Virus record (IMG/VR): IMGVR_UViG_3300046787_000286
Location: 1-64,000 of that record
DNA: 64,000 nucleotides
Direction: 5' to 3' (one strand)
The notes under the pieces are model-generated. The model worked only from the letters and a program-made list of their open reading frames with translations, was not told where the DNA came from and ran no database searches. The position numbers were made by a program, and so were the translations under genes. Positions 18,712 to 62,406 of this stretch are shown here, piece by piece (the first letter of the stretch is position 1; each line of letters starts with the position of its first letter).

Positions 18712-18737
18712 ACTTTTATTCATCCTTCCTGTATACT
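18709..18737 (+). promoter_or_regulatory. sigma70-like promoter TTTACT-17-TATACT
   Basis: Correct 17-nt spacing, immediately before ATG 18744, at the head of the glycan island. Confidence 0.55.
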
Positions 18738-18743: not shown

Positions 18744-19049
18744 ATGAATACTGAAAACATTGTTGCACACGCACGAGCTCGGTTTGATCACGAGAGTGCA
18801 AAACGAGTACTTAAAGAAAAATACCAGGCCAAACTGATATTTGCCCACAACGGCGGCATGTTTAGAGCAACTCCTGAACTGCTTGCATTTGTGCAAAGCT
18901 GGCCTATTGCCGAACTGTATATTGCAGACTTGTATAACAACCCAATTGAAGTAGACAAACAAGTATTCCTAGTAAAGTTGCAGCAACACTACCATGAACA
19001 AATGAATGCTTGGCATGTAGAGTATACAGAAATGAGCAACAAACGATGA
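18744..19049 (+). CDS. Hypothetical protein (possible fibre assembly chaperone)
   Basis: 101 aa helical protein; ATGA-coupled to the next gene. Confidence 0.6.
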   Translation: MNTENIVAHARARFDHESAKRVLKEKYQAKLIFAHNGGMFRATPELLAFVQSWPIAELYIADLYNNPIEVDKQVFLVKLQQHYHEQMNAWHVEYTEMSNKR

Positions 19050-19855
19050 CCACAGGCGCACTGATATTTGCGTTCAACAATGAAAAAACTGATTACGTTA
19101 AGATGGCCACTTGGTGTGCTAAAAGGATTCGTGCGCACCTCGACATTCCGGTTGCAATCGTCACAGATAACACAAACAGTGGATTACATCAACAATTTGA
19201 TCATGTCATTAACGCAGGAGCGCAAACCGGGGGTTCTAGATACTTTGAAGATTATGCAGACTCTGTGTCGTGGCACAACGCCGGAAGAACTGACGCTTAT
19301 AACTTATCTCCATTTGAGCAAACCCTTGTACTCGATTCCGATTACGTGGTCTGCGGTGATCAATTACAGCAAGTCTTAAACGCTCCGCAGGACTTTCTAG
19401 CACATAGAGCAGCATTTAATGTTGCTCGCCCCGAAGAACCTTTTTTAGACACATTCGGGCGCAACAAATTTCCCATGTGGTGGGCCACAGTAATGATGTT
19501 TCGTAAAAGCCCTACAGCACAATACATTTTTGATTGTATGGAAATGATCAAACACAATTGGCAGCACTACAGAAACTTATACGGAATAACAGAACACCAT
19601 TACCGTAACGACTATGCACTAAGCATTGCATTGGGTATTGTGAGTGGGCACACACTAAAAGTAGATTCGATTCCTTGGCCATTGATGAGTGCTATGCCTG
19701 ATACAGAATTAACAAGAGACACGTATGGCAGTGCCGAAGCCTGGATCATGAAGTATGCAGGCCGTGACGGAAAGCCTAAAAGTGTTAGCATTGCAGGGCA
19801 AGACTTTCATGCAATGGGTAAAAAGTATTTGGAGGCAATAATTGACGCCAGTTGA
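19046..19855 (+). CDS. GT-A fold glycosyltransferase-like (GT8-like)
   Basis: Start reassigned to ATG 19046 (ATGA overlap). 'TLVLDSDYVV' DxD motif, 'WWATVMMF', 'RNDYALSIA'. Confidence 0.65.
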   Translation: MTTGALIFAFNNEKTDYVKMATWCAKRIRAHLDIPVAIVTDNTNSGLHQQFDHVINAGAQTGGSRYFEDYADSVSWHNAGRTDAYNLSPFEQTLVLDSDYVVCGDQLQQVLNAPQDFLAHRAAFNVARPEEPFLDTFGRNKFPMWWATVMMFRKSPTAQYIFDCMEMIKHNWQHYRNLYGITEHHYRNDYALSIALGIVSGHTLKVDSIPWPLMSAMPDTELTRDTYGSAEAWIMKYAGRDGKPKSVSIAGQDFHAMGKKYLEAIIDAS

Positions 19856-20618
19856 AGAACGCGGATACATTATCCCTGCATTTAATGTTGGTAAGATTGA
19901 CTATGTTGACTGTGCTAGATCGTTAGCAAAAACGCTGTTGCTGCATCATCCTGATGCTAGAATCTGTTTGTTAACCAACGACAAGTCGGCGACTGATCAT
20001 CACTTGTTTGCTTACACGCACATAGTAGAAGACATTGATACTGCGAACCCTTATGCGAATGACACACTGGTGTTTAGTCACACACCGTTTAGGCAAACAA
20101 TTAAACTAGAAGCAGACATGATGGTTGCTAGTGCAGTTGACCATTGGTGGACACTGTTTGAACATCGTGATGTTGTTGTTAGTCGAGGCAGTAGGGACTT
20201 TTACGATCAACCTGCTACAAGTAGAAAGTATCGCAAACTGTTTGATAACAACAACTTGCCCGATGTGTACAACGCTATAACATATTGGCGAGTAAGCAAA
20301 ACTGCCACAGATTTCTTTAAACTTGTAAGGAAAATCTTTACAAATTGGGAAAGCTACAAGATTTTATTAAAGTTTCCCGAGGAAGTACCGTCCACTGATG
20401 TAGTGTATGCAATGGCTGCACAAATATTGGGACCAGAACAAGTGACATTACCTCCAGGGCTAGGTCCACAGATTGTGCATATGAAGACTGGTATGAGTCC
20501 GTTCTCTGCGCCACATTGGACTGATGAATTAGTTTGGGAAATGAATCCGCTACGTATCCAAACTGTGGCGCAATGGGGCTTCGTGCATTTACATGTAAAG
20601 GATCGTATAGATGAATGA
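19842..20618 (+). CDS. GT-A fold glycosyltransferase-like, paralogue of the previous gene
   Basis: TTG start with GGAGG RBS. 'TPFRQTIKLEADM' (ExD in place of DxD), 'PDVYNAITYW', 'TDVVYAMA'. Confidence 0.6.
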   Translation: MTPVEERGYIIPAFNVGKIDYVDCARSLAKTLLLHHPDARICLLTNDKSATDHHLFAYTHIVEDIDTANPYANDTLVFSHTPFRQTIKLEADMMVASAVDHWWTLFEHRDVVVSRGSRDFYDQPATSRKYRKLFDNNNLPDVYNAITYWRVSKTATDFFKLVRKIFTNWESYKILLKFPEEVPSTDVVYAMAAQILGPEQVTLPPGLGPQIVHMKTGMSPFSAPHWTDELVWEMNPLRIQTVAQWGFVHLHVKDRIDE

Positions 20619-20958
20619 AACTACACAAAACTTACTGGATGTATTTGCCAACTTAGCGCCCTGGCAACCGCCTGTTGTATTTTGGAGATTGCATTACGGT
20701 GAAGTAGGAGAGCCATTGTTTTACACCCAGGAAGATAAACCAGGTAATTACATTGATGTAACGCCTGAGCAATACCAACGTGCTAGCATGCAAGTTAAGG
20801 TAGTTAACAGGAAGTTAGTAGAGCTGTCAACTAAACGTACACGCAAGTTGATGCCTAGTACAACAGGAACTCCTTGCTATCTCTCTGATGTTAGCATTGT
20901 TGTTCCAACAACTGAACAGCACCAGTGCTGGAGATTAAAAACAAATGAAACAAATTGA
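20611..20958 (+). CDS. Hypothetical protein
   Basis: 115 aa; overlaps both neighbours as in an operon. Confidence 0.65.
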   Translation: MNETTQNLLDVFANLAPWQPPVVFWRLHYGEVGEPLFYTQEDKPGNYIDVTPEQYQRASMQVKVVNRKLVELSTKRTRKLMPSTTGTPCYLSDVSIVVPTTEQHQCWRLKTNETN

Positions 20959-21871
20959 CATCGCAGACTTAGACTGCATTTACCTATCGTATGATGAACC
21001 ACAAAAAGAAGAGCATTGGGTCAAGATTAAGAACATGGTGCCTTGGGCACGAAGGGTCGATGGCGTTAAGGGCAGCGATGCTGCTCACAAAGCAGCGGCA
21101 CAGGCCAGTAACACTGATAGATTCATTCTCATTGATGGCGACAATCTCCCCGACCCGTCGTTTTTTAATCAAACGCTTGTTCTTCCTACAGAAGAATACG
21201 AGAACGCTGTTTTCCGCTGGCGGGCACGTAACAATATCAATGGACTAATGTATGGCAATGGTGGTTTATCTTCGTGGACCAAGGAGTTTGTCCATAATAT
21301 GCAGACTCATGAAGCTTCCGACGGACGCACCGAAACCCAGGTCGAGTTCTGTTTCGATCCCCTTTATTGGGCTATGCACGATTGTTATTCTACCACCTAT
21401 CCCAATGGGAGTGCGTTCCATGCCTGGCGTGCAGGATTTCGCGAGGGTGTTAAAATGTGTCTTAACCGGGGTGCAAAGCCATCTGTTGCGGAGTTCCAAA
21501 GCCGTGTTCACAGCAAGAACTTGGATAACTTAACTATCTGGCACAACGTGGGTGCAGATGTAGAATACGGTGAGTGGGCAATTGCAGGGTCACGTATGGG
21601 CACTTATATGACTATGTTAACAGCATGGGATTATACTGCGGTACAGAACTTTGACGAGTTAGAGAAGTTATGGGACACTGTTAAAGATGATAATCCAAGA
21701 CATGTTGCGCTTAGAATCGCTACAGAGTTAAACGCACAACTAGACTTACCAATGATTATTTTAGAATCTGAACAAAGTGCTTTCTTTAAGAAACACTACC
21801 TTTCTAACTGGCACAACCGTGGCATAATGGTTAGAGAGATTGATGTTATTAGACAACAAGAAGGCTGGTAA
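20945..21871 (+). CDS. Glycosyltransferase-like (GT-A) protein
   Basis: 'DCIYLSYDEP', 'RVDGVKGSDAAHKAAA', 'FILIDGDN' DxD motif, 'AWRAGFREGVK'. Confidence 0.6.
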   Translation: MKQIDIADLDCIYLSYDEPQKEEHWVKIKNMVPWARRVDGVKGSDAAHKAAAQASNTDRFILIDGDNLPDPSFFNQTLVLPTEEYENAVFRWRARNNINGLMYGNGGLSSWTKEFVHNMQTHEASDGRTETQVEFCFDPLYWAMHDCYSTTYPNGSAFHAWRAGFREGVKMCLNRGAKPSVAEFQSRVHSKNLDNLTIWHNVGADVEYGEWAIAGSRMGTYMTMLTAWDYTAVQNFDELEKLWDTVKDDNPRHVALRIATELNAQLDLPMIILESEQSAFFKKHYLSNWHNRGIMVREIDVIRQQEGW

Positions 21872-21877
21872 CAGTTA

Positions 21878-23269
21878 ATGACCAAAAGCGTTTTTCAAAG
21901 CTCAGCAGATGAAATGCAAAGCAAGTTAGGTCCTGCAATGTGCCTTGCTAAATGGCAACAAACCAGTTTACACTTAACTACAGGGCACACCAATTCATGC
22001 TATCATCCTCCGTTGCACAAAATTGAACTGAGTGACATAGAAAATAATCCGTCTGGATTGCATAACACTGAGCATAAAAAACAGCAACGTGTGATAATGC
22101 TAAAGAACGAACGCCCTTCAGAATGTTCCTACTGCTGGAACATGGAAGACCTGGGCAAAACAAGCGATAGGCACTACAGATCAGGCGAACCTTGGGCAGC
22201 AGAACACTATGACACAATCAAAAACTCAACTGGACTCGAACGGGACGTTACACCTTCATACGTGGAGGTTAACTTTAATAATGCTTGCAATCTACGTTGC
22301 TCTTATTGCTCTCCTCAGTATAGTTCTAGCTGGGCCGATGAGTCCAATAGGCACGGCGCATATCCTACTAGCGTACCTCATAACGCACCTGAATATTTTA
22401 GTGGCAGTAGGAGACCTATCCCGTCTAGGGAAGCTAATCCATACGTTGATGCGTTTTGGGAGTGGTGGCCGGAGCTTTACCCTAATCTAAAACATTTTAG
22501 AATGACTGGCGGCGAGCCACTAATGGATAAGAATACACACCGTGTATTAGATTACGTTATAGCTAACCCCAGCCCGCAACTGCACTTGAACGTAACTTCA
22601 AACTTTTCAGTAGAAGAAGTACTGTGGCAAAAGTATCTAGACAAAGTCAAGCGCATTTGCGACGGCCGCATCGAACACTTTATGCAGTATGTGAGTTTAG
22701 ATGGCTTTGGATCGCAAGCAGAATACATTAGACACGGGCTTGACTTTAGATTACTGTGGGACAGAGTAAATCAATTCTTAACAGAAGTTCCTGAGTATTC
22801 TAGTTTGACATTTATTGTAACAATGAATAATCTAAGCGTGAATTCATTCAGCAGCTTGATGTCGGGCATATTTGGGTTGCGTCAGATATATTCTAAAACG
22901 TATCAACGTGTGTGGTTCGACACCCCTGTGCTTCGCGATCCTGCGTGGCAAAGTTTACAAATACTACCTGAAAGCTATGCTGACCGTTTGGAAACAACCT
23001 GGGCATGGATGGTAAATCCCTGTAAAGATGTGTCTGAGCCTAATCCGCTGCATGTGTTCAAGGACTATGAGCTTGCTAGATTAGATCGTGACATAGCGTG
23101 GATGCGTGAAGGGCAGAAAATGGACCCTGTGGAATTAAACAAGCGCAAAGCAGACTTCTATCGTTTCTTTTCGGAGCACGATCGACGTCGCGGCACAGAC
23201 TTCAATTTAATATTCCCTGAAATGAAATCATTCTGGCAGGAATGTGAGTACCATGCCAAAAACTCCTAA
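21878..23269 (+). CDS. Radical SAM protein 1 (N-terminal twitch/SPASM-like)
   Basis: CNLRCSYC (CxxxCxxC), 'MTGGEP', N-terminal CLAKW..CYH and CSYCW. Confidence 0.9.
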   Translation: MTKSVFQSSADEMQSKLGPAMCLAKWQQTSLHLTTGHTNSCYHPPLHKIELSDIENNPSGLHNTEHKKQQRVIMLKNERPSECSYCWNMEDLGKTSDRHYRSGEPWAAEHYDTIKNSTGLERDVTPSYVEVNFNNACNLRCSYCSPQYSSSWADESNRHGAYPTSVPHNAPEYFSGSRRPIPSREANPYVDAFWEWWPELYPNLKHFRMTGGEPLMDKNTHRVLDYVIANPSPQLHLNVTSNFSVEEVLWQKYLDKVKRICDGRIEHFMQYVSLDGFGSQAEYIRHGLDFRLLWDRVNQFLTEVPEYSSLTFIVTMNNLSVNSFSSLMSGIFGLRQIYSKTYQRVWFDTPVLRDPAWQSLQILPESYADRLETTWAWMVNPCKDVSEPNPLHVFKDYELARLDRDIAWMREGQKMDPVELNKRKADFYRFFSEHDRRRGTDFNLIFPEMKSFWQECEYHAKNS

Positions 23270-24329
23270 GCTAGTGTTAGACACATTCTCAGAAGTATAC
23301 AATCTACTAAAGCCTTATGCTGATGACGAATTCTGGGATTTGTCACAGCACGATATTATCCCGGGCGCCACGTATGTTGTAGGGCGCAAGCAATGTATAG
23401 ATCATCGCGAGCGTTTACTAGAGTTAGCAAATAACAACACTATACAGCTAGTTATAAGCAACCCGCACGAAGGTTCGCAAACACTAGCAGGGCAAATGAC
23501 ACGTCTGGGGTTCAAGAACGCCAACATCAAGCTAATAGGCGGGGGCAACATGCCTGCAGACTGGGACTACATACTCTACGATAAGTTCCTGCCCGAAATA
23601 CTGGACTACGAAGAAAACTTGATAGCAGCAGACTCTACTCTTGCAATATACAACAAAACATCTAAGCCATACCAGTTTCTTTTTCTAAATGGCAGAGCTC
23701 GCCCACATAGGGCAGACTTAATTCGCAAGCTCGCTACCAGATCATTGCTAAACAACAGCTTGTGGACCAATCTAGACTCAGGAAATGGTGCTGTGCAAAC
23801 ACTGCACCCAGCTTACGAAGTTCCTCGCTATAGAAACAATGCCACAACTGATCACTATGTCAAGTTCGAATTGTTTAATAATGAATGGGGAGAAATCTAT
23901 TTAGAACCTGCGCCTTATATTGATACCTATTTTAGTTTGATAACAGAAACAGTATTTGATATTCCTTATAGTTTCCGCACAGAAAAGATTTGGAAACCCA
24001 TTGTTATGGGTCATCCTTGGATAGCAGTGGCCAACGCAGGCTTTTATAGAGACATGCGCAACCTAGGCTTCCAAACATACTCGCATCTAATAGACGAATC
24101 CTTTGACAGTATTGAAAATAATACAGACAGATTGGATAGAATAGTCGATATAGTAAAAGATTTATGCAGTCAAGACCTTGCGGCTTTCTTGCAAGAGTGC
24201 TATAATACTAGTAAATACAATCAGCAACATCACAGGGAAATGGCCGCAAAGGTCCGAAAAGAATTTCCCGAACGCTTTTTCCAATTTATCAATGAACGAT
24301 CTAGAATACCGCCAGCAAGTACTGGATAA
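23253..24329 (+). CDS. GT10-like (GT-B) glycosyltransferase-like protein
   Basis: 'YFSLITET...RTEKIWKPIVMGHPW...LGFQTY...DESFD' resembles the alpha-1,3-fucosyltransferase C-terminal motif; start probably ATG 23253. Confidence 0.6.
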   Translation: MPKTPKLVLDTFSEVYNLLKPYADDEFWDLSQHDIIPGATYVVGRKQCIDHRERLLELANNNTIQLVISNPHEGSQTLAGQMTRLGFKNANIKLIGGGNMPADWDYILYDKFLPEILDYEENLIAADSTLAIYNKTSKPYQFLFLNGRARPHRADLIRKLATRSLLNNSLWTNLDSGNGAVQTLHPAYEVPRYRNNATTDHYVKFELFNNEWGEIYLEPAPYIDTYFSLITETVFDIPYSFRTEKIWKPIVMGHPWIAVANAGFYRDMRNLGFQTYSHLIDESFDSIENNTDRLDRIVDIVKDLCSQDLAAFLQECYNTSKYNQQHHREMAAKVRKEFPERFFQFINERSRIPPASTG

Positions 24330-25620
24330 ACTTTCACCTAGCTTTTGTGCTGCCAAATGGTACAATGCTACTATATGGCTGGGCTCAGGGCAAACAACCA
24401 GTTGCCATCACCCTCCTGCACATGCCATAGATGCAGAAGCAGTTAAAACAAACCCTGCTGCATTGCACAATACCAAACAAAAGAAAATTGATCGTTTAAT
24501 GATGCAAAATGGGGAAAGACCCTCAGGTTGCGAATACTGTTGGAAAATTGAAGACATGGGAGTAGATGCAGTTAGCGATCGTGTGTACAAATCCAAGATA
24601 TATCCCATAAAGGCTTTAAATGACGCATACTCGACACCTGCTGCACATGACGTGGATCTCCGTACTTTGGAGATTGCTTTTGATCGTACTTGTCAGTTTG
24701 CTTGTAGCTATTGCAACCCAGCATTTAGTTCTACATGGGTTAATGATATTAAACGTAACGGACCCTACACTAACTTGGTTAGCGATGGTAGGAATCACTT
24801 CACTCATACTCATGAGTCTAGTCAGCTATATCGCTACGGGGAAACCAATCCGTATGTTGAGGCATTTTTTGACTGGTGGGAATCGAGCTTACATAGAACA
24901 CTTCAAGAGCTACGAATCACAGGAGGAGAGCCCCTCATGTCCGCCCACACATGGAAGCTCATTGATTGGTTCAAAACAAATTCGGGCAAGAGTAATACAC
25001 GCTTGGCTATCAATAGTAACCTCGGGACTGAGGTCGACGTCACACGTTTACTGGAATCCACGCAGGGTCTAGACGTAGAAATATACACTAGCATGGAAGC
25101 TGTAGGTGCGCAAGCTGAATACATTCGCGACGGACTTGTATATGCAGACTGGCAAGCAAACGTAGATAAGCTGTTAAACGCAGGTGTTACAGTACACTTT
25201 ATGGCAACCATTAATGCTCTTTGTTTGGAAACTCTAACAGATCATTTAAATTACTTGCTGACCTTGAAAGAATTATACGGGCGTGATCGTGTTAATTTTA
25301 CATTAAATATTCTACGCTTTCCGTCATTTCAAAGTGCTCTAGTACTGGATCCAGATGATCGCACCTATTTTAAATTGGCGTTGCAGTCATGGCTAAACGC
25401 CAACGGCAACAGCCCTTTATTGCACGAACACGAAGTTAATCACACACAACGATTAATTGATTACTTGGACATTGTTAAAACACCGCACTCGGATACGTTT
25501 GACATGCCCAAGTTACTGAATGACTTTAAACATTTCTACGAGCAATACGACCTGCGTAGGAAAAAGAATTTAAAAGAAACATTCCCTATTATTGGATATT
25601 GGTATAATTTATGTCTATAA
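24292..25620 (+). CDS. Radical SAM protein 2
   Basis: CQFACSYC, 'ITGGEP', N-terminal CAAKW..CHH and CEYCW; start probably ATG 24292. Confidence 0.9.
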   Translation: MNDLEYRQQVLDKLSPSFCAAKWYNATIWLGSGQTTSCHHPPAHAIDAEAVKTNPAALHNTKQKKIDRLMMQNGERPSGCEYCWKIEDMGVDAVSDRVYKSKIYPIKALNDAYSTPAAHDVDLRTLEIAFDRTCQFACSYCNPAFSSTWVNDIKRNGPYTNLVSDGRNHFTHTHESSQLYRYGETNPYVEAFFDWWESSLHRTLQELRITGGEPLMSAHTWKLIDWFKTNSGKSNTRLAINSNLGTEVDVTRLLESTQGLDVEIYTSMEAVGAQAEYIRDGLVYADWQANVDKLLNAGVTVHFMATINALCLETLTDHLNYLLTLKELYGRDRVNFTLNILRFPSFQSALVLDPDDRTYFKLALQSWLNANGNSPLLHEHEVNHTQRLIDYLDIVKTPHSDTFDMPKLLNDFKHFYEQYDLRRKKNLKETFPIIGYWYNLCL

Positions 25621-33407: not shown

Positions 33408-34885
33408 ATACACTAGGCATATCAGCAGGGTTTCATGATGCAGCAGCGTCTGTAATTGACCGCGACGGTAACATACTGTTTGCCAGTCATTCTGAACGTT
33501 ATAGTAAACAAAAGAGTGACTCAGATATTTCGTTAGAAATGTTAAACGAAATAGATATGAGTACTGTAGATACCATTGCGTACTACGAGCGTCCTTTAGT
33601 TAAACAACTACGTCAATTTTATTCCGGACAAGGGATTGAGTGGGATAAGCTAACTACTCGACAAGTATTAGAACAACAGTTGGGCTACAACAGAATTGGC
33701 AATCGCAAGCTAAAAAGCTACAATCATCACTTGTGTCATGCAGCCGCAGGCTTTCAAACCAGCTCGTTTGATCGTGCTACTGTAGTTGTGATTGATGCAG
33801 TAGGCGAGTTTGAAACCATTACTATATGGGGAGCAGAATATGATAAACACGGTCGTGCAAAGTATAAGAAACTTTGGCAACAACATTACCCACATTCAAT
33901 TGGACTCTTTTACACTGGAGTTACTCAGCGGGTTGGCCTACGCCCACTAGACGAAGAATACATTCTAATGGGAATGGCAGCATACGGCAGTAACGACGTT
34001 AGTAATCGCATGCGTTATGATCTAATAGACGACGAATGGGAAATACGTTTCAAGGAGAACTTGCATCTAGGACTGTCAGTTAAATATCTAAGCGATTATT
34101 CAGACTTTGATATTGCTGCCGGCGCACAAGACTTGGTAGAAGACCTGATACTCAACGTTATGGTTCGAGCAAGAAAGTTCAAGTGGAGCAGTAATTTAGT
34201 CTACATGGGCGGTGTTGCTCTTAATTGCTCTGCTAATAGGAGAATTGGAAATTATTTCGATAATATATGGATTATGCCTAATCCTGGCGATGCTGGCAGT
34301 AGTCTTGGCGCTGCCGCTTTGGCTCATGGGCGTAAAATTAACTGGAGCAACGCTTATCTCGGGCATGATATTCCTGGTGCTTATCCTGTTAACGACATAC
34401 TTGATGAGCTACTTGTTCGGAAGATTGTGGGAGTGGCTTCCGGGAGAGCCGAGTTCGGTCCAAGAGCACTTGGAAACAGAAGCCTGCTTGCAGATCCTAG
34501 AGGCAGCGAGATTAAGGAGAAAGTAAATGACATTAAACGTAGACAACAATTCAGACCATTTGCGCCCGTTATTTTGGAGGAACTGGCTGATACTTACTTT
34601 GATATGCCTCGTGGCTTCAGTAATAGTAGGTATATGCAGTCAGTCGCTCGTTGTAGGGTACCTGAGTTATTTCCTGCTATCGTTCACGCTGACGGCACTA
34701 GTCGTGTTCAGACAGTGCCGAAAGATGGATCAGGCATTAGAGAACTGCTTGAAAAATGGTACGTAATGACTGACTGCCCCATGTTGCTTAACACAAGTTT
34801 AAACATACGTGGGGAGCCTATGGTTAACGATCGAGCAGACGCTGACCGCTTTGAACGAGAGTATGGGGTTAGAGTATGTTCTTAA
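33404..34885 (+). CDS. Carbamoyltransferase (NodU/CmcH family)
   Basis: 'GISAGFHDAAA', 'HHLCHAAA', 'GGVALNC', 'GRAEFGPRALGNRS', 'RQQFRPFAP', 'LLNTSLNIRGEP'. Confidence 0.95.
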   Translation: MNTLGISAGFHDAAASVIDRDGNILFASHSERYSKQKSDSDISLEMLNEIDMSTVDTIAYYERPLVKQLRQFYSGQGIEWDKLTTRQVLEQQLGYNRIGNRKLKSYNHHLCHAAAGFQTSSFDRATVVVIDAVGEFETITIWGAEYDKHGRAKYKKLWQQHYPHSIGLFYTGVTQRVGLRPLDEEYILMGMAAYGSNDVSNRMRYDLIDDEWEIRFKENLHLGLSVKYLSDYSDFDIAAGAQDLVEDLILNVMVRARKFKWSSNLVYMGGVALNCSANRRIGNYFDNIWIMPNPGDAGSSLGAAALAHGRKINWSNAYLGHDIPGAYPVNDILDELLVRKIVGVASGRAEFGPRALGNRSLLADPRGSEIKEKVNDIKRRQQFRPFAPVILEELADTYFDMPRGFSNSRYMQSVARCRVPELFPAIVHADGTSRVQTVPKDGSGIRELLEKWYVMTDCPMLLNTSLNIRGEPMVNDRADADRFEREYGVRVCS

Positions 34886-36059
34886 CCAGCTCTGCTAGCT
34901 TTAGTTTCTTATCCAAGCTGCTGAGATATAGCTGACGATTATACTGCATATCTTCCCACATACTCATATACCAGGCGTGCATGTCCAGGTTTTTTATTTT
35001 CTTTACAGCTTCCACACATAGTTTAAAACGCTCAGTGTTATCTTCCACTTCGTCATAACTGTTGTCAATTGCATAGTCATAGGTTCTGTACCCTAATTTA
35101 CGCAAAGTCTTTAATGTATGTGGAGTACCGAATACCACAAATGGTTGTCCGTGACGAATAGGTTTAAACACCTTTTCACTAATGAAACAACCGTTGCTGC
35201 CGTCTGCATCAAAGAACGTTTCTAGTACTAAATGACAATAGCTATCAGCATAGTGCTCAGGTACAAACATCCAGTGACTGTTATGTTCTGTGGCGTTTTG
35301 TTCGTCGCACTTGTAAGGCCCTGCTGCTAAAAACTCAGCCATGCTGGTATCTAGCCTGGCAAATTGATGCACTTGAATTGGGTTGTCTTCGTAACGATCG
35401 CCAATGTCCACATTGCCGTAACTCCAGTAGCTATTGCCCAGCAACTGATTATTATACAAATGACTCACAATAGTTGAGCGCCACCATTTGTGTACACGAC
35501 TTAATAGTGTAAACTCTCTATTGCGCTTGAACAGGTGAGGCTCACACCCAATTTGCGGAATATCATTCCATACTACACTATTGCGCCAGTAAAACAATTC
35601 GTGATCAGCAAAGTAAACAAAGTTATCTATACTGTCTGCTTCTGTGTTACCGGATATAAAGCGATAGCAGTCTACTGGCAAGTTATGCTCCGCACACAGT
35701 TGATCTAGTCGTGCTTTTTCGTGATGCGGATTGTCGCCTTCGTGATAATAGAATAACGCACGTAATTTGCCACTACGCAGATAGCTTCTAACTTGCTCGC
35801 TCATTAGGCCAAAGAAGTCTAGTGAAAAGTCAAACCAACTGATACCAATAGGGTAGAACGCATTGGGCGGCAATGACTCGTTGATGTAGCTGATGTTAAT
35901 AGGAAAGCCGTGATCCGCTGCATAGTAGAATATGCGTATGGGACAAATAAATGGATACTCGTCACCTATGTCACTGTATCCTGTGCGTGTGTCTGTCCAG
36001 GGTGCTAGATTAGGGTAAGGCCCTGCAGAGCCTGTTCGATCATAAACGAGATTCAGCAT
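34869..36059 (-). CDS. GT10-like glycosyltransferase-like protein
   Basis: 'CHLVLETF...FISEKVFKPIRHGQPF...LRKLGYRTY...DNSYD'; paralogue of 23253. Confidence 0.6.
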   Translation of the reverse strand: MLNLVYDRTGSAGPYPNLAPWTDTRTGYSDIGDEYPFICPIRIFYYAADHGFPINISYINESLPPNAFYPIGISWFDFSLDFFGLMSEQVRSYLRSGKLRALFYYHEGDNPHHEKARLDQLCAEHNLPVDCYRFISGNTEADSIDNFVYFADHELFYWRNSVVWNDIPQIGCEPHLFKRNREFTLLSRVHKWWRSTIVSHLYNNQLLGNSYWSYGNVDIGDRYEDNPIQVHQFARLDTSMAEFLAAGPYKCDEQNATEHNSHWMFVPEHYADSYCHLVLETFFDADGSNGCFISEKVFKPIRHGQPFVVFGTPHTLKTLRKLGYRTYDYAIDNSYDEVEDNTERFKLCVEAVKKIKNLDMHAWYMSMWEDMQYNRQLYLSSLDKKLKLAELVKNIL

Positions 36060-37185
36060 GAATATCCTTTAACATAGATTGTAGCTCGTCCCACAGAATC
36101 TCTTCAAAACCACCATTATAGAAGTGTTTCCAATTATGCTCGACCGTCTCACGACAAAGGTGGAATAGTGCAATTCTTTCTTCAACGGAAAGGTCACAAA
36201 GAGTTTTAAGCAAGCTGGCAATCGCTGCGATACGCTCATGAGGATCCGCAATTGTGTCGTAGGTCTCATCCCATATATGCCCAAAAGTCTTAAATCCATA
36301 ACTACGCAAATACTCCAAACTGCCTTGTGTTGCTACTAGCACAAACGGCATACCTAATGCAATAGGTTTAAATGTTTTCTCTGTTAAATGATGTCTGCGA
36401 CCATCTGCAACAGTTTCGGTTACTAAGTATAGCAGACTATCTGCTGCTTGGTCAAACAAACTGAGCCAGCATGAATGCATGGGGTGATCAGTTTCGTTCT
36501 CAAAGTTAATAGGCAACTGCTGTGCAGCAAACACATCCTGTATATCTGGGTAGATTCCTAACAATGGCTCAGCAGCATCTACTATGCTTATGTTCTCAGC
36601 AGGGCACACAGCAGGGCACGAAATGTGATTGTCTGTTAGATTGTTCTTGAATATGTGATAAAGCATTTCCAATCTGTGTTTGCGTTCGCCTGCAATAATA
36701 CGGTTAGGTGCTATAAACGTTCGAGTAGGAGCACGTTTAGCAATAGGTGTAATTAGGAATGTTTTATTATATCCTCTATACCAGTCTAGTGCTGCCCAAC
36801 CGTGAAAGAAATAGTAATAACTGCGCCAGCCAAAAGATGCACACAATTCATCCACAGCATCGCTATCACGTTCACTGGTTACAATGCTACCGGGCCACTT
36901 TTTGTAACCTTCAAATTTGGGTAAATTCTCAGCGTTCCAGTGAATGTCGTAATTGTGGTAATCTCTAACTCGATCAAACGTAGGTAAGTGTATACCCAAA
37001 TGAATTGGCTCTTGATCAAAAAATAGTGTATAATTATACTCGGGTATGTCATTTAGTCCATAATTAAGTATACTATCAGGATCGCTTCTACCGAATGGAT
37101 CGCAAAATTGTATTCTATGGCCTGGTAAATTTTTCTTAAACCACGGCCAAAATGTATTTTGATATATTTCGTCTATTCTAAACAT
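36040..37185 (-). CDS. GT10-like glycosyltransferase-like protein
   Basis: 'LYLVTETV...LTEKTFKPIALGMPF...LRSYGFKTF...DETYD'. Confidence 0.6.
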   Translation of the reverse strand: MFRIDEIYQNTFWPWFKKNLPGHRIQFCDPFGRSDPDSILNYGLNDIPEYNYTLFFDQEPIHLGIHLPTFDRVRDYHNYDIHWNAENLPKFEGYKKWPGSIVTSERDSDAVDELCASFGWRSYYYFFHGWAALDWYRGYNKTFLITPIAKRAPTRTFIAPNRIIAGERKHRLEMLYHIFKNNLTDNHISCPAVCPAENISIVDAAEPLLGIYPDIQDVFAAQQLPINFENETDHPMHSCWLSLFDQAADSLLYLVTETVADGRRHHLTEKTFKPIALGMPFVLVATQGSLEYLRSYGFKTFGHIWDETYDTIADPHERIAAIASLLKTLCDLSVEERIALFHLCRETVEHNWKHFYNGGFEEILWDELQSMLKDIHAESRL

Positions 37186-38989
37186 GTTTGATATTTTTTA
37201 TATTGGCCAGAAGCCAAATCTTTTTGCCCACGAGCAGCCAGTTGATAGCATAAAGCAAGCACAAGAACTCAGCAGAACTAGATATTGTTGGGTAATAAAT
37301 TACTTAGCGGATCTGGGCAGTTGGGATTTTCTTTGGGAACCAAGTCCGTGGCAAAGTCACTTTAGACATGCATGGCCCAGCCAACATCAAAAAGACGCAG
37401 GCGTATATCTTGTTCCCAAGACCTGGAATGGAACTGACACACACTACCATACTAGCCCTGCTGTAACTAGACTATCAGGTGTCGACAACTGGAGCGGTGT
37501 TAATTATAACTTTGACTATTCGTGGCACCCAGACTACAGTGAGCCACCGTACATTTATCAGTTTGGTACACAGCACCAACGCACAGGTGGCCCACAATAT
37601 ATTATTCCGGGCGCAACAGAAATCAAGTTTGTAGACCAATACAAGGTCAAAGTTGATAGGGTTGCTACAGCTATTGTAGAAATTGATCACTTGGACGGTA
37701 ATGCAGGACACATACCCGGTGCTACTGATAGAGCAAGATACTTTGACAACTACAGAGATACGCTGATTCGTATTGCAAAAAAATTAAACGGGCAACACGA
37801 ATTTGCTTGGATATGTTCTAGCATCTGCGACTACGAAGGGTTTGACTTTTCGTGGCACCCAGAGCAGTGGCAAGCAACAATGCTTCATGTATTCCCCAGC
37901 AATGATCAAAAGTTTGGCGATACATTCTTTATGCATGTGCCTACCTTTGCGTATCGAGCAGAACAGTTTAAATTACTAGACTGGTATGATGTAAACTTTA
38001 TTGATACAGTAGTACCTAGACGTCGATTACCTGTGATAGAACACACCAGTGACAGTCAAGCAGAAGCAATCAAAAGCACCGACTGGGCAGGGCCATTGGC
38101 ATTGTTTACAGTGGACGGATTGCCAATGACTATCCCCGCAGTGTCTTTATGGAGACAAGAAACAAAAACAATCATGCCGTTGAGTAAGGGCGCAAGTTCT
38201 GTAATTGTTCCTAAAACAGCAGTGCCATATATCAAAACACAGCTATACGATTACCCTTACATAGATAAAACTAATACTAGGCGTGCTAGCGATCAACCTC
38301 TAGACATTGTGTTTATCAGCAACGGTGAATCAAATGCAGAAGACAACTGGATGATGTTGGAAAACAGGATCTTGTTGTTGGAACCAAACAAACTACACAG
38401 AGTAGATAGAGTCAACGGTCGAGCTGCTGCTTATCATGCCGCTGCTAGAGCAAGTACTACACCTTGGTTCTTTGCAGTGTTTGGCAAGTTAGCAATCGAT
38501 TTAAGATTTGATTGGGAGTGGCAACCTGATCGCATGCAGGAAGCCAAGCACTACATCTTCCACGCTCGTAATCCTGTTAATGGATTAGAGTATGGCCATC
38601 AGGCAATGATTGCTTACAACAAGCAATTGGTATTAAACAATCCTGGGGTAGGACTAGACTTCACACTAGATAGCCCACACGAGGTTGTTCCTATCCTTAC
38701 AGGCACAGCCTATTATAATGATAGTGCGTGGCAGTGCTGGCGCACAGCGTTTCGCGAAGTTCTAAAGCTCAAAGCAAGTCTTCCTGATGTAGAAGCAGAG
38801 TATCGTATTAGTCGCTGGCTACTCCCTAACTTTGGAGATATTGATAAGTGGAGCCAGTTGGGCGCACAAGATGCAGTTGAGTACTACGATGAAGTGGACG
38901 GAGACTTCGATGCTCTTAAAAAGAGCTATGAATGGGAATGGCTAGCAAGCTATGCGTTCGTTAAACGCAGTCTAGTACCTGGTCAATAA
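37184..38989 (+). CDS. Multi-domain glycosyltransferase-like protein
   Basis: 601 aa with an internal repeat ('FDYSWHP' / 'FDFSWHP'). The C-terminal domain is paralogous to 20945 ('DIVFIS', 'AAAYHAAA', 'WRTAFREVLK'). Confidence 0.6.
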   Translation: MFDIFYIGQKPNLFAHEQPVDSIKQAQELSRTRYCWVINYLADLGSWDFLWEPSPWQSHFRHAWPSQHQKDAGVYLVPKTWNGTDTHYHTSPAVTRLSGVDNWSGVNYNFDYSWHPDYSEPPYIYQFGTQHQRTGGPQYIIPGATEIKFVDQYKVKVDRVATAIVEIDHLDGNAGHIPGATDRARYFDNYRDTLIRIAKKLNGQHEFAWICSSICDYEGFDFSWHPEQWQATMLHVFPSNDQKFGDTFFMHVPTFAYRAEQFKLLDWYDVNFIDTVVPRRRLPVIEHTSDSQAEAIKSTDWAGPLALFTVDGLPMTIPAVSLWRQETKTIMPLSKGASSVIVPKTAVPYIKTQLYDYPYIDKTNTRRASDQPLDIVFISNGESNAEDNWMMLENRILLLEPNKLHRVDRVNGRAAAYHAAARASTTPWFFAVFGKLAIDLRFDWEWQPDRMQEAKHYIFHARNPVNGLEYGHQAMIAYNKQLVLNNPGVGLDFTLDSPHEVVPILTGTAYYNDSAWQCWRTAFREVLKLKASLPDVEAEYRISRWLLPNFGDIDKWSQLGAQDAVEYYDEVDGDFDALKKSYEWEWLASYAFVKRSLVPGQ

Positions 38990-40049
38990 CATATTCAACT
39001 TCTGAATCTGTTAGCTCAGGATAGATAGGCAAGCTCAAACAACGTCTGCTTAGAGCTTCTGCGCCACTAAAGAAACGTTCGCTGTGGTAGCAATTACTAT
39101 ATGCTGGTAAACTCCACAAAGGCTCTGTGTAATGCACTTTTGTTTCAATGCCACGTTCTTTAAGTTTAGCGGCCACTTGATCTCGGTTGTCTAGTGCAAT
39201 AACAAACTTGTGATAGCAATGCTTGTCAAAGTTTGTTTTATCTATTAAACTACGCACAGGGCTATTTTCTAAACGAGTCATCCAGTCTTGTGCAATAACT
39301 CGTCTACGATGTTGCCAGTAATCAATAGCGCGAGTCTTGACCATCATTTGGGCACAGTCTATTTCACTCATGCGAGAGTTAGATCCTGCCATGTGATGTT
39401 TGTGATGTTTTCCGTGTGTGGTCCAGTCTCTAGCAAACGAAGCCAGTAACGAATCATCTGTTACAATAGCGCCGCCGTTGCCATAGTTTGCTAGATTCTT
39501 TGTGGGATCGAAACTAATAGCAGTGGCTTTACTGCGACGTCTACATTTATCTGCAAGCCAATGCTGGGCACCATCCTCGATTACGTAGTCTGAATAGTAA
39601 TACGCAGTATCATCAGCAAGTGCCTGTCCGTATAACCCAACTACGCATACGGCTTGACGACTACGACTGCGATCGATCTTGTTGTAGTCTATTTGTCCGT
39701 AAGCATCTGTGTCAATAAGATCTATTTCCCAACCTGCACGACTCCATGCGTTGGCAGTAGCAGGGAATGTTAGTGCAGGGAGTATCACACGCGGAGGGTG
39801 TATACTTTGTTCTTCGGCATAATACGCAGCAATAATTTCTAATGCTTGTGTGCCAGAGTGGCAGGTTACTGCATGTCGTTGACGATTCTTGTTAGCAAGC
39901 CATTCTTCGAACAGTGTAGTTTGTTCCCCGCTCATGAGGTTACCTGAACGCAACACTCGATCAGTTGCATCCAGGATTTCTTCTCTGAGATTGTTATACT
40001 GCCTTTGGATTCCAGTAAACGGAATTGTTAAGCCATTTGTAGTATTCAT
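38961..40049 (-). CDS. DegT/DnrJ/EryC1/StrS PLP-dependent sugar aminotransferase
   Basis: 'SGTQAL', 'IEDGAQ', 'SFDPTKNL..YGNGGA' (catalytic Lys), 'NSRMSEI', 'LSLPIYPEL'. Confidence 0.92.
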   Translation of the reverse strand: MNTTNGLTIPFTGIQRQYNNLREEILDATDRVLRSGNLMSGEQTTLFEEWLANKNRQRHAVTCHSGTQALEIIAAYYAEEQSIHPPRVILPALTFPATANAWSRAGWEIDLIDTDAYGQIDYNKIDRSRSRQAVCVVGLYGQALADDTAYYYSDYVIEDGAQHWLADKCRRRSKATAISFDPTKNLANYGNGGAIVTDDSLLASFARDWTTHGKHHKHHMAGSNSRMSEIDCAQMMVKTRAIDYWQHRRRVIAQDWMTRLENSPVRSLIDKTNFDKHCYHKFVIALDNRDQVAAKLKERGIETKVHYTEPLWSLPAYSNCYHSERFFSGAEALSRRCLSLPIYPELTDSEVEYVIDQVLDCV

Positions 40050-40962
40050 GGAATCCTTGTTCTACGTCAATCTTGGGGTCAAAACCTAGTTTAGCTCTAG
40101 CCTTGTCAATGTTTAGTGCGCCACGACTTGGAAAGTCTGCGTCTTTGTCTTTTACTTCTATTGAGCCTTTGCCCACAATACTAACCACCATTTGGGCGGC
40201 TTGGAGGAGTGAGACTGAATGAGATTTAGTAATGTTGTAAGTATCGTTCGCAGCACCCACTTCCAGTGCAGCCGCCACAATTCCATCCGCAGCGTCATCG
40301 ACATAGGTAAAGTCCAGTGTCTCCGACGCTCCGTTAACCTTAAGGGTTTCACCACGCATGGCTGTAAGCATAAACTTTGCAACAACTCTATCTTCCACGT
40401 CCAGAGGCCCGTATACTGCCGATGGACGTATGATAACATACTCCATTCCTGTTCGTCGTGCGTAATCTTTGACAAGCCATTCTCCTGCAAGTTTCATAAT
40501 GCCGTATTGTCCCTGTGGGTTGCATACTGCATCTTCTGTGACTTGATCTTGAAAGTCACCATACACCATTGAACTGGAGATATAAACAAAACGTCTAACT
40601 CCGTGTGCTTTAGCACTTTCTAGCAAGTTGATCAAGCCACGCATCATTACATCCGCACCTGCTTGTGGGTTTGCGTTTACAACTTTCTGTCTAGGAAAGC
40701 TGGCCATGTGTATCAACACTTCTGGCTTGGTAGATTTTACAACAAAATCAATATTGTCTTTGTCTGCAATATTAGTACTGTAATGCAAGTGGTACCCAAT
40801 CTTATCACCACGTTGATGCATTAAGTAATCAATTTCGCTTTGCGGAATGATGCCGTAGGTTGTTTTGTTGTCGACAATACTTGTGTGATGTTTTAAATCT
40901 TTCAAGCGTTTGATAACGTTGTGACCGATTAGGCCGTACCCGCCTGTTACTAATATTTTCAT
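39994..40962 (-). CDS. NAD-dependent NDP-sugar epimerase/dehydratase (extended SDR)
   Basis: 'ILVTGGYGLIG', 'ISSSMVYG', 'YGIMK' (YxxxK), 'RPSAVYGP', 'LDFTYVDD'. Confidence 0.92.
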   Translation of the reverse strand: MKILVTGGYGLIGHNVIKRLKDLKHHTSIVDNKTTYGIIPQSEIDYLMHQRGDKIGYHLHYSTNIADKDNIDFVVKSTKPEVLIHMASFPRQKVVNANPQAGADVMMRGLINLLESAKAHGVRRFVYISSSMVYGDFQDQVTEDAVCNPQGQYGIMKLAGEWLVKDYARRTGMEYVIIRPSAVYGPLDVEDRVVAKFMLTAMRGETLKVNGASETLDFTYVDDAADGIVAAALEVGAANDTYNITKSHSVSLLQAAQMVVSIVGKGSIEVKDKDADFPSRGALNIDKARAKLGFDPKIDVEQGFHEYYKWLNNSVYWNPKAV

Positions 40963-62376: not shown

Positions 62377-62406
62377 CTACTTTTTTGCATTTTGGGTAAA
62401 GTGTTA

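Follow-up and report, generated by a model that had tools for sequence, protein, structure and literature searches.

A large family of uncultured giant bacteriophages, and one cultured relative, carries a conserved block of about 20 genes just after its tail-fibre genes that joins sugar-transferring enzymes to five to seven unusual radical SAM enzymes, and this block most likely builds a heavily modified glycan for the virus particle. We examined a window of 64,000 nucleotides (positions 1 to 64,000 of IMG/VR record IMGVR_UViG_3300046787_000286), in which genes are named here by their first coordinate. The first-pass annotation had described a 22-kb island of seven radical SAM, seven glycosyltransferase (GT)-like and three further sugar-tailoring genes, mostly translationally coupled, and this observation is confirmed. 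Its interpretation, a phage-encoded pathway for a tailored glycan directed at virion proteins rather than DNA, is supported only in part. No paper that we found describes the module.

Seven ORFs on the + strand carry the CX3CX2C motif (21878, 24178, 25611, 27311, 28693, 29885 and 30984), of which the last six are consecutive. All seven hit Pfam Radical_SAM and exceed the curated cut-off of the uncharacterized NCBIfam family NF033640, at 227-395 bits against 170. An eighth member of this family, absent from the first-pass annotation, lies unlinked at 62392..63600 (+) after a tRNA cluster (NF033640, 246.8 bits; phrog_14086). In this family the auxiliary-cluster "twitch" domain is N-terminal. Radical SAM 1 (21878..23269, 319.6 bits), with CX3CX2C at residue 137 and twitch cysteines at 22/41/83/86, is present in 79 of 82 IMG/VR loci. 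Radical SAM 2 (24178..25620, 283.4 bits) is present in 80 of 82 and is 53% identical to gp202 of the cultured Ralstonia phage RsoM2USA; its match starts at residue 53, and its true start is probably about 24260-24290. Radical SAM 3 (25611..27314, 395.5 bits over residues 168-565) has an extra N-terminal extension of ~165 aa that is lacking in most of the 81 of 82 loci in which the gene is present. Radical SAM 5 (28693..29901, 341.4 bits) is present in 80 of 82 loci, with 7867 homologues at E <= 1e-5 among the 8000 candidates scored, and radical SAM 7 (30984..32279, 282.3 bits) in 77 of 82. In contrast to these five core genes, radical SAM 4 (27311..28696, 226.7 bits) is accessory, being present in only 12 of 82 loci, and radical SAM 6 (29885..30997, 235.8 bits), also accessory, is private to this contig in the sampled set, with 0 of 82 loci at >= 35% identity. 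Each radical SAM paralogue is 57-83% identical to its orthologue in other phages but only 20-31% identical to its neighbors, and the five core copies are therefore old and specialized.

The three groups of GT-like paralogues are real by BLASTP, although they are not equally well supported as glycosyltransferases. The first-pass annotation had named structural modeling of these genes as GT-A or GT-B folds as a point on which its reading could fail, and two of the three groups do give glycosyltransferase folds. The group it called GT10-like comprises 23244..24329 (+), 34869..36059 (-) and 36040..37185 (-), with 34869 matching 23244 at 3e-19 and 36040 at 2e-15. The AF2 model of 23244 (pLDDT 86.9, pTM 0.85) adopts a predicted GT-B fold. 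Its top Foldseek hits in the PDB are nearly all GT-B enzymes, albeit weak (E at least 0.019), and its nearest named matches are giant-virus glycosyltransferases, the BFVD hits including a Mimivirus protein annotated GT10 (5e-6), Mimivirus L138 (3e-5) and an Indivirus GT (1e-6). No Pfam GT10 hit was found. Genes 34869 and 36040 are present in 68 and 73 of 80 loci, respectively, and extra copies of the C-terminal domain of 36040 are interspersed among the radical SAMs in relatives.

The second group consists of 20945..21871 (+), which is related to residues 373-567 of 37184..38989 (+). Gene 20945, the most conserved non-radical-SAM gene, has invariant DGD and AAHKAAA motifs and a mean column identity of 82% across 22 orthologues, gives a weak Glyco_tranf_2_3 hit (E 0.005), and is 38% identical to RsoM2USA gp350. 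Gene 37184, present in 80 of 80 loci, encodes a multi-domain protein of tandem GT-A-like domains, whose C-terminal domain has FAK in place of DGD. Its AF2 model is of low confidence (pLDDT 65.8), but Foldseek matched it to the tandem GT-A enzyme LH3 (1.7e-4), the chondroitin polymerase K4CP (2.5e-3), GtrB and PBCV-1 A64R. The third, "GT8-like" group, 19010..19855 (+) and its paralogue 19842..20618 (+), rests on motifs only. These putative GT-A/GT8-like transferases have a conserved, DxD-like LDADY motif, but profile searches gave no GT8 support, no Pfam hit was found for 19010, and hhalign of 19010 against a GT8 profile gave P 0.0028 but only 10.8% probability. Gene 19842 hits phrog_1903 at E 1.4e-8 and is present in 69 of 82 loci.

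The carbamoyltransferase, the DegT aminotransferase and the SDR are solid assignments. The NodU/CmcH-type carbamoyltransferase (33404..34885, +) has both Pfam domains, Carbam_trans_N (125.7 bits) and Carbam_trans_C (158.1 bits), at E 2e-46 and 4e-36, and hits phrog_1601 at E 2e-93. The DegT-family PLP sugar aminotransferase (38961..40049, -; Pfam 211.8 bits, E 2e-62) falls below the PseC equivalog cut-off and is closest to 3-aminotransferases and to an inosose-type transaminase, its best PDB relatives being a glutamine-scyllo-inositol transaminase (3.6e-41), then QdtB, 2oga and WbpE. The extended SDR (39994..40962, -; Pfam Epimerase, 7.7e-45), present in 75 of 80 loci, is of the nucleotide-sugar epimerase type, with UDP-glucose 4-epimerase as its best PDB hit (1.3e-27). 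It has GGYGLIG, SSSMVYG and YGIMK motifs, and as SSSMVYG stands where 4,6-dehydratases carry the acid pair, the classical dehydratase-plus-aminotransferase route to an amino sugar is doubtful.

Three conserved genes had been left unassigned in the first-pass annotation. The first gene of the module, 18744..19049 (+), encodes a 101-aa protein of unknown function that is present in 56 of 82 loci at 44-60% identity and has a homologue in RsoM2USA gp354, while 20611..20958 (+) encodes a 115-aa protein of unknown function present in 67 of 82 loci; neither gave a family hit. Gene 32269..33309 (+), present in 71 of 82 loci, encodes a 346-aa partner protein of unknown fold, rich in invariant His, Glu and Asp residues, for which we found 623 representative clusters at E <= 1e-3 but no PDB, Pfam, PHROG or NCBIfam hit. 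A fourth conserved small gene, 41222..41554 (-, 110 aa), has no Pfam hit but is syntenic next to the SDR in 69 of 80 loci, and is probably the last gene of the module.

The genes of the module overlap by 4-40 nt or are 6 nt apart, so translational coupling is plausible. The module is, however, separated from the upstream fibre genes. An intrinsic terminator hairpin at 18692..18711 (+), with an 8-bp stem containing 5 G-C pairs and a T-rich tail, closes the fibre operon, and a hairpin at the same place recurs in nearly all of 41 distinct upstream sequences with compensatory stem changes. This is followed by the module's own promoter-like site at 18709..18737 (+), TTTACT-17-TATACT, whose -10 ends 6 nt before the ATG of the first gene. 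A -10-like TAYAAT box is conserved just upstream of the ATG in the relatives, and the site differs from the strong early class TTGACCA...TGCTATAMT. Upstream lie three tail-fibre-type genes (15739-16344, 16396-17685 and 17699-18673, +), with hits to phrog_11259 and to fibre and structural PHROGs and a Peptidase_G2 intramolecular chaperone domain in 16396. These are preceded by a single ORF (1239..15566, +) for a giant 4775-aa fibre-like or structural protein with FG-GAP and CBM5/12 hits, a candidate acceptor. The positionally equivalent giant protein of RsoM2USA, gp361, whose gene heads the fibre block and whose sequence was not compared here, was found in virions by mass spectrometry (PMC8504454).

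Rather than an island, the region is a clade-wide conserved module. The same order is seen in 82 + 80 IMG/VR loci (at least 160), in two contigs binned with a Haliscomenobacter MAG and, in part, in RsoM2USA, again after the giant virion protein and fibre genes. Conservation of the placement beside the fibres had been set out in advance as a test of the virion reading, and it holds in 37 of 40 informative loci, where a fibre gene lies directly upstream, as well as in RsoM2USA.

Gene neighborhoods in unrelated settings independently link these radical SAMs to glycan chemistry. In Vibrio phage K566, four copies interleave with two Pfam-significant GT8 genes and a weak, sub-threshold GT4-like hit, although this cluster is not near structural genes. 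In Bacteroidota, a Saprospiraceae cluster holds GT4, GT2-like, PMT_2, SDR and UbiA genes, and a Fluviicola cluster holds three copies with a carbamoyltransferase and a UbiA-GT4 fusion. Moreover, a radical SAM of the type of 25611 is fused to a 32269-like domain in P0266, which lies between Laminin_G_3 proteins, and the order radical SAM, 32269, carbamoyltransferase recurs in L170. The carbamoyltransferase co-occurs with N-twitch radical SAMs in RsoM2USA, L170 and Fluviicola. There are also precedents in the literature: the Mimivirus fibril cluster R135-L143 combines an aminotransferase, an SDR and GTs next to the fibril gene (PMC10117803), and pelagimyophage host-recognition clusters mix fibres, GT8 genes and radical SAM cassettes (PMC7029224).

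Taken together, these data enabled us to propose a model, which we hold tentatively (probability about 0.4), in which the region is a separately transcribed glycan-building and glycan-tailoring module of a large clade of Rak2/RsoM2USA-like jumbo myoviruses that acts in the host cytoplasm and most likely decorates virion proteins. In this model, soluble GT-A-type transferases (20945, 37184 and probably 19010 and 19842) and GT-B-type transferases (23244, 34869 and 36040) would assemble an oligosaccharide from nucleotide sugars, with the SDR supplying an epimerized donor. The five core N-twitch radical SAM enzymes, plus the two accessory ones here, each with a SAM cluster and a four-cysteine auxiliary cluster, would each perform one position-specific radical reaction on a sugar residue, namely oxidation of an alcohol to a ketone, epimerization or deoxygenation, working together with the 32269 partner protein. 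DegT would then convert a radical-SAM-generated keto group into an amine, following the BtrN/BtrS logic of aminoglycoside biosynthesis, and the NodU-type enzyme would O-carbamoylate a hydroxyl group. No module protein has a transmembrane segment, all appear soluble, and the module has no lipid-carrier enzymes; in this view the acceptor must therefore be cytoplasmic. What our analysis demonstrates is the gene families, the predicted folds of two GT groups, the conservation, the synteny and the recurrent co-occurrence, whereas the action of the radical SAMs on sugars, the identity of their reactions and the virion protein as acceptor are inferences, with no direct evidence for any glycan, acceptor or reaction. 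The terminator and separate promoter-like site mean that co-expression with late structural genes is not shown, and as fibre-proximal regions are plastic zones the adjacency may be historical. The analogy with BtrN/HygY is by class only, the only PDB sequence match at E <= 0.01, from the single query 28693, is the peptide-modifying SkfB (E 2.9e-4), and the bacterial clusters point to lipid-linked envelope glycans rather than to protein glycosylation.

Other readings are less likely, but DNA glycosylation and a free metabolite are not excluded. Hypermodification of DNA, in which an oligosaccharide built on a modified base would be tailored by the radical SAMs, aminotransferase and carbamoyltransferase and protect the genome from host nucleases, would fit enzymes that are all soluble and cytoplasmic, as DNA-modifying enzymes are, a sigma70-like promoter-like site outside the fibre operon and an early-class promoter upstream of 34869. 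Large glycans on phage DNA also have precedent, such as the ~1 kDa substituent on thymidine in YerA41 (PMC9023294) and diverse DNA glycans (10.1101/2023.12.21.572611). A ThyA-family gene sits next to the module in this contig, but it passes the thymidylate synthase equivalog cut-off (342.5 against 327), and its adjacency is kept in only 3 of 80 relatives. In agreement with the first-pass annotation, no hydroxymethylase was found, nor any base kinase, TET/JBP enzyme or DNA methyltransferase, within the 64 kb, the remaining 150 kb of the contig not having been seen. Moreover, the top 50 viral matches of the GT-B model include no protein named as a phage DNA glucosyltransferase, only giant-virus GTs and unnamed phage proteins, and the homologous cellular clusters are envelope-glycan-like. 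We consider this reading unlikely.

Similarly unlikely is that the module remodels a host cytoplasmic glycan precursor, for superinfection exclusion or receptor masking, or makes a free, aminoglycoside-like carbamoylated molecule that acts on the host or on competing phages. The toolkit does mirror aminoglycoside pathways, with a twitch radical SAM, a DegT transaminase closest to an inosose-type enzyme, a carbamoyltransferase and GTs, as in BtrN, BtrS and TobZ. Bacterial relatives of the radical SAMs sit with UbiA, GT-C and an ABC transporter, which is envelope or export chemistry, and the authors of the pelagimyophage study interpreted fibre-cluster GTs as modifying the host O-chain (PMC7029224). 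However, the module has no membrane protein, flippase, polymerase, ligase, exporter or cyclitol synthase, seven GTs are many for a small molecule, and the strict synteny with the fibre genes across the clade is left unexplained. Least likely is direct radical modification of structural proteins in the manner of RiPP maturases, with the radical SAMs cross-linking or epimerizing residues of the fibres or of the small proteins 18744 and 20611, both conserved within the module, and the GTs acting separately. This draws on weak similarity to SPASM/twitch peptide maturases such as SkfB, PapB, ScmE and DynA, and on P0266 and a second radical SAM lying between Laminin_G_3 adhesin-like genes with no GT nearby. 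Conversely, similarities to MoaA, viperin, NirJ and BlsE are just as weak, no RRE-type recognition domain was detected, and the twitch domain is N-terminal, where maturases carry the RRE. Fibre protein 16396 and protein 18744 have no cysteine and 17699 has only one, and the recurrent partners are GTs and a carbamoyltransferase, not peptidases or leader-peptide genes.

If the favored reading is correct, this clade of giant phages would assemble a radical-tailored, aminated and carbamoylated glycan in the cytoplasm of its host and attach it to virion proteins, namely the fibres and the giant fibre-like protein encoded just upstream. The module would most likely build a heavily modified sugar coat for the virus particle, by a chemistry that nobody has yet characterized.

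The phage is a jumbo myovirus whose 214-kb contig was analysed over its first 64 kb, and whose baseplate wedge protein (62-1237) matches Rak2-like phages and other jumbo phages at 33-38% identity. A 4775-aa ORF with FG-GAP and CBM5/12 hits follows, and then three fibre-type genes, one of them with a Peptidase_G2 intramolecular chaperone domain. From 18744 to about 41554 lie 23 tightly packed genes, named here by the first coordinate of their reading frame. A megablast of 20 kb against GenBank phages found no match. The first-pass annotation had reported seven radical SAM paralogues among these genes, and this observation held: seven ORFs carry one CX3CX2C motif each and hit Pfam Radical_SAM. 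All seven, together with an eighth at 62392-63600, exceed the curated cut-off (170 bits) of NCBIfam NF033640, "twitch domain-containing radical SAM protein", with scores of 226.7-395.5 bits. The eighth lies 21 kb from the module, just after a cluster of six tRNA genes (59069-62312; Leu-GAG, Val-GAC, Leu-TAG, Cys, Asn, including one odd call with an undetermined two-base anticodon at 62224-62312), and on the opposite strand to its neighbours.

The NF033640 family is unusual because its auxiliary-cluster domain is N-terminal. Four conserved cysteines (C-x17/18-C...C-x2-C) precede the SAM-cluster motif by about 45-50 residues, which explains why Pfam places the SPASM hit before the core in 25611 and 28693, and both cysteine sets and a GG.P motif are invariant in a 12-sequence alignment. 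SAM cleavage was not assayed, and to our knowledge the family has no characterised member; none was found in the literature search. Radical SAM 25611 has an extra ~165-residue N-terminal extension (25611-26110), shared by only about 20 of the 80 relatives, which contains the most hydrophobic stretch in the module (KD 1.78 near residue 77). We considered an intron or intein in 25611, but the long matches that had suggested one are simply two adjacent paralogues. The long ORFs of 23244 and radical SAM 24178 overlap by about 150 nt in different frames (24178-24329), as also seen in relatives such as locus L004, and the true start of 24178 is probably further downstream.

BLASTP confirmed the three paralogue groups of glycosyltransferase (GT)-like genes proposed in the first-pass annotation. 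None of them gives a significant Pfam, PHROG, NCBIfam or PDB-sequence hit, even when searched as family profiles; searches of 32269 against PDB sequences likewise returned nothing, and NCBIfam searches of all ten unassigned proteins returned nothing useful. Whether these genes model as GT-A or GT-B folds had been set out in advance as a point on which the interpretation could fail. For the "GT10-like" group (23244, 34869 and 36040), an AlphaFold model of 23244 built on 23 orthologues is confident, with pLDDT 86.9 and pTM 0.85. Against solved structures its top hits are almost all GT-B enzymes (glycogen synthase, EXTL3, Tps1, TagF, BshA and MurG), but they are weak, with E at least 0.019 and TM 0.3-0.4. 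Against predicted viral structures the model matches many unnamed phage proteins as well as, strongly, annotated GTs at 1e-6 to 3e-4, including giant-virus GTs such as a Mimivirus protein annotated GT10 (5e-6) and Mimivirus L138 (3e-5). The two sets of matches differ in strength, and the comparison does not settle the GT-B assignment. No match to the GT10 sequence family was found in Pfam, NCBIfam or PHROG, the only link being structural, to the Mimivirus protein and to a cyanophage protein annotated fucosyltransferase (6.5e-3). A profile comparison (hhalign) of the GT-B family with DUF6071 showed no relation.

For the "AAHKAAA" group, the model of 37184 is only modest, with pLDDT 65.8. Its hits are nevertheless uniformly GT-A enzymes, led by the tandem-GT-A protein LH3 (1.7e-4) and chondroitin polymerase K4CP, with PcManGT, GtrB and A64R also present, whereas the Pfam GT2_3 match of 20945 scores only E 0.005, below the gathering cut-off; a GT-A fold is thus suggested without being decided. 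A DxD motif is present, D64-G65-D66 being invariant in 20945 orthologues, but the aligned position in its paralogue 37184 reads FAK, so that domain may be non-catalytic. The "GT8-like" pair (19010 and 19842) has a conserved LDADY motif, yet 0 of 36 family members hit Pfam Glyco_transf_8 at E <= 0.1. An hhalign comparison with a four-member GT8 profile aligns 157 columns in register but is not significant, with P 0.0028 and 10.8% probability; single-sequence comparisons were not significant, no structure was predicted for this pair, and no relation to the AAHKAAA family was detected by hhalign. In sum, two groups point to the anticipated folds at moderate strength, while the GT8-like pair rests on motifs only.

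Scanning IMG/VR with radical SAM 25611 returned 80 loci, and scanning with DegT returned 80 more, so that at least 160 viral loci carry the module. Mapping the window's proteins onto these loci by tblastn gives the same order throughout: fibre genes, 18744, 19010, 19842, 20611, 20945, radical SAM 21878, 23244 (present in some), radical SAMs 24178, 25611, 28693 and 30984, 32269, the carbamoyltransferase, the two minus-strand GT-B genes, 37184, DegT, the SDR and 41222. This is a conserved module, not an island as the first-pass annotation had it. Five radical SAMs are core, each present in 77-81 of 82 loci, whereas 27311 is accessory (12 of 82) and 29885 is private to this contig. Orthologues are 57-83% identical but in-genome paralogues only 20-31%, and the copies are therefore ancient and specialised. 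Constancy of position relative to the structural genes had likewise been named beforehand as a test, and a fibre gene lies directly upstream in 37 of 40 informative loci. The neighbouring thymidylate synthase (41592-42491) is not part of the unit, being adjacent in only 3 of 80 loci; at 299 aa, against about 264 aa for the model, and with its match split into two stretches by two of the models, it probably carries an internal insertion.

The cultured Ralstonia phage RsoM2USA carries the front half of the module in the same order: the giant protein gp361 and the fibre block, gp354 (the homologue of 18744), gp353 and gp352 (the homologues of 19010 and 19842), gp350 (the homologue of 20945), gp349 (a radical SAM) and gp348. 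Of these, gp361, together with gp356, was identified in its virions by mass spectrometry (PMC8504454). A second RsoM2USA locus (125035-129043) holds a radical SAM, gp202, that is 53% identical to 24178; it is surrounded by three paralogous DUF6071 genes and lies next to the carbamoyltransferase gp199, and DUF6071 may be another partner family of these radical SAMs. Two different jumbo-phage contigs of 183 kb and 148 kb (NZ_JBBAKG010000001.1 and NZ_JBBAKG010000003.1), each carrying the full module, are binned in one RefSeq MAG labelled Haliscomenobacter sp., which is either a host hint or, more likely, a binning artefact. We rejected assignment of the host to Saprospiraceae from MAG binning, as the window uses classical TTGACC/TATAAT promoters and an SD-like GGAG lies upstream of at least 16396, neither of which is typical of Bacteroidota.

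The 70-bp gap after the last fibre gene (18674-18743) holds a strong terminator hairpin (18692-18711), followed by the promoter-like site TTTACT-17-TATACT, with the T-rich tail of the terminator doubling as the -35 region. Both elements recur in nearly all of the 41 distinct relatives examined, and the hairpin stem shows compensatory changes. The -10 box ends 6-7 nt before the ATG of 18744 and no Shine-Dalgarno sequence intervenes, so the first gene may be translated from a leaderless mRNA. The module is therefore its own transcription unit, although its timing cannot be inferred from these data. Its promoter differs from the strong motif TTGACCA...TGCTATAMT, probably the early promoter class, which occurs eight times in the window and always on the minus strand (47516-62376, and also 36426-36455); one copy lies inside GT-B gene 36040, about 370 nt upstream of 34869. 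The early block also holds a DUF2201 metallopeptidase/VWA protein and a MoxR-type AAA ATPase (48842-50149 and 53662-54753), with an SPFH/Band 7 protein at 47597-48514.

Sequence similarity says little about what the radical SAMs work on. Scores to MoaA, viperin, NirJ, BlsE and the peptide maturases are all far below their cut-offs, and the only PDB match, in a search with the 28693 copy alone, is SkfB at 2.9e-4. Gene neighbourhood is more informative. In Vibrio phage K566, a 255-kb phage carrying NAD-salvage genes (PnuC transporter, nicotinamide phosphoribosyltransferase) and probably KVP40-like, four family members interleave with two Pfam-significant GT8 genes and a weak, sub-threshold GT4-like hit, although this cluster is away from structural genes. 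An uncharacterised Bacteroidota gene cluster recurs in two contigs. On a 285-kb Saprospiraceae MAG contig, two members sit with three PhyH oxygenases, UbiA, GT4, an SDR, a GT2-like gene and a PMT_2 GT-C. On a Fluviicola contig, three members sit with a carbamoyltransferase with DUF5989, a UbiA-GT4 fusion, WelO5, three PhyH genes and an ABC transporter. Two solitary bacterial copies, in Chromatiales and Bacteroidia, had uninformative neighbourhoods, and our profiles A1-A5 detected nothing in K566, in the first RsoM2USA locus or in the bacterial clusters. A profile of the orphan gene 32269 finds 623 representative clusters, one of which, P0266, is a fusion of a 32269-like domain with a 25611-type radical SAM, and on another contig the order radical SAM, radical SAM, x, 32269-like, carbamoyltransferase recurs. 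The recurrent partners are thus glycosyltransferases and a carbamoyltransferase, which supports sugar tailoring.

The carbamoyltransferase, DegT and SDR calls are unambiguous. The NodU/CmcH/TobZ-type enzyme has both Carbam_trans_N and Carbam_trans_C domains, at 125.7 and 158.1 bits against cut-offs of 24 and 27. DegT matches PF01041 at 211.8 bits but reaches no equivalog cut-off (PseC scores 152 against 423.5), and is closest to a glutamine-scyllo-inositol transaminase and to the 3-aminotransferases QdtB and WbpE, and 2oga (which we identify as DesV). The SDR has GxxGxxG and YxxxK, but reads SSSMVYG where 4,6-dehydratases carry their catalytic acid pair, and its best solved relative is UDP-glucose 4-epimerase. 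The dehydratase function implied by the "SDR plus DegT" route of the first-pass annotation is therefore not supported, and no ketoisomerase or dehydratase is evident; we also considered the 110-aa protein 41222 as a cupin-type 3,4-ketoisomerase, but it has no Pfam hit. We therefore suggest that the keto substrate for DegT is produced by a radical SAM dehydrogenase, as in the BtrN/BtrS pair of butirosin biosynthesis. That pair is established, whereas its application here is inference.

No module protein has a membrane segment, which led us to reject host envelope glycan assembly by the phage proteins themselves, and there is no lipid-carrier transferase, flippase, polymerase or ligase. Assembly must therefore occur on a cytoplasmic acceptor: a phage protein, DNA or a small molecule. 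We favour virion proteins, because synteny with the fibre genes is conserved, the giant virion protein lies directly upstream, and P0266 lies among Laminin_G_3 proteins. Mimivirus offers a parallel, with its aminotransferase, SDR and GTs clustered beside the fibril gene (PMC10117803), and pelagimyophage host-recognition clusters show the same mixture of fibres, GT8 genes and radical SAM cassettes (PMC7029224). The interpretation of the first-pass annotation is thus partly supported: the gene families, their conserved order and their recurrent association with sugar enzymes come from the analysis itself, whereas the radical SAM chemistry and the virion acceptor are inferred, virion proteins not having been analysed for glycans here. 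DNA glycosylation is weakened by the neighbouring ThyA homologue, which we had considered as a hydroxymethylase but which scores as a bona fide thymidylate synthase, and by the absence of any hydroxymethylase, TET/JBP enzyme or base kinase in the 64-kb window, although the remaining 150 kb of the contig were not examined. A role as RiPP maturases is not supported, as no RRE/PqqD-like recognition domain was found with Pfam or NCBIfam and maturase equivalog scores are 18-36 bits against cut-offs of 265-855.

A comparison with known systems highlights both similarities and differences. The Mimivirus fibril glycosylation cluster (R135-L143) and chlorovirus capsid glycosylation are likewise virus-encoded, host-independent sets of soluble GTs with a DegT-type aminotransferase and an SDR, clustered next to the gene for the fibre protein that they decorate (PMC10117803), and the matches of the 23244 model to Mimivirus L138 and the GT10-annotated protein, and of the 37184 model to PBCV-1 A64R, fit this likeness. 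However, those viruses are eukaryotic giant viruses, their clusters contain no radical SAM enzyme (the term "radical" does not occur in PMC10117803) and no carbamoyltransferase, and their SDR is a true 4,6-dehydratase. In mycobacteriophages, phage-encoded GTs modify the capsid and tail-tube subunits (Freeman et al. 2023, PMC10527164, as cited in PMC12619734). That system, found in siphoviruses of Actinobacteria, has one to a few GTs, uses host sugar donors and has no radical SAM, aminotransferase or carbamoyltransferase genes. The host-recognition clusters of pelagimyophages and cyanomyophages mix tail-fibre genes with GT8-type GTs and radical SAM cassettes (PMC7029224), and a T4-like marine genome with 12 radical SAM genes has been reported (PMC5332604). 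Those phages are T4-like and their clusters are described as hypervariable, whereas this module is strongly conserved in content and order; their function is likewise untested.

Among enzymes, the twitch/SPASM radical SAM proteins acting on sugars or cyclitols (BtrN, HygY, NeoN, BlsE), and the BtrN/BtrS oxidation-transamination pair, also use a radical SAM core plus an auxiliary 4Fe-4S cluster and are encoded beside DegT transaminases, GTs and, in the tobramycin pathway, a carbamoyltransferase. The relationship of DegT to a glutamine-scyllo-inositol transaminase and a weak BlsE hit are in keeping with this comparison. In the present family, however, the auxiliary domain is N-terminal rather than C-terminal, no significant sequence match to BtrN was found, there are five to seven paralogues per genome, and the context is a phage. 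The Bacteroidota clusters share the same radical SAM family (37% identity to 25611) in two or three copies, with GTs, an SDR and a carbamoyltransferase, but carry membrane enzymes (UbiA, PMT_2), Fe/2OG oxygenases and an ABC transporter, and lack the phage-specific families 18744, 19010/19842, 20945, 23244 and 32269.

A more far-reaching possibility, which we consider unlikely but not excluded, is that the N-twitch radical SAMs are a new class of post-glycosylation tailoring enzymes, each carrying out a position-specific radical epimerisation or oxidation on sugar residues already attached to a phage structural protein, with the 32269 protein acting as a substrate-presenting partner. In this way a phage could make rare amino and carbamoyl sugars from ordinary host UDP-sugars without any dedicated nucleotide-sugar pathway, and the result would be a virion glycan coat that shapes host range or shields the particle from defences.

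Virus-encoded glycosylation of virions is established for giant eukaryotic viruses and for a few mycobacteriophages, but not for jumbo phages of Gram-negative bacteria, and no known viral glycosylation system contains radical SAM enzymes. Full-text literature searches found only passing mentions of radical SAM cassettes in phage genomes, and none described this module or the function of this radical SAM family; what is new is the coupling of such a system to a battery of N-twitch radical SAMs, a partner protein and a carbamoyltransferase. The module is abundant, with more than 7800 environmental homologues of one paralogue alone, and its core is carried by a cultured phage, RsoM2USA, so the question is open to direct testing. 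If the radical SAMs tailor sugars on an assembled glycan, that would be new enzymology, and it would also explain why aquatic myoviruses keep radical SAM cassettes in their host-recognition regions.
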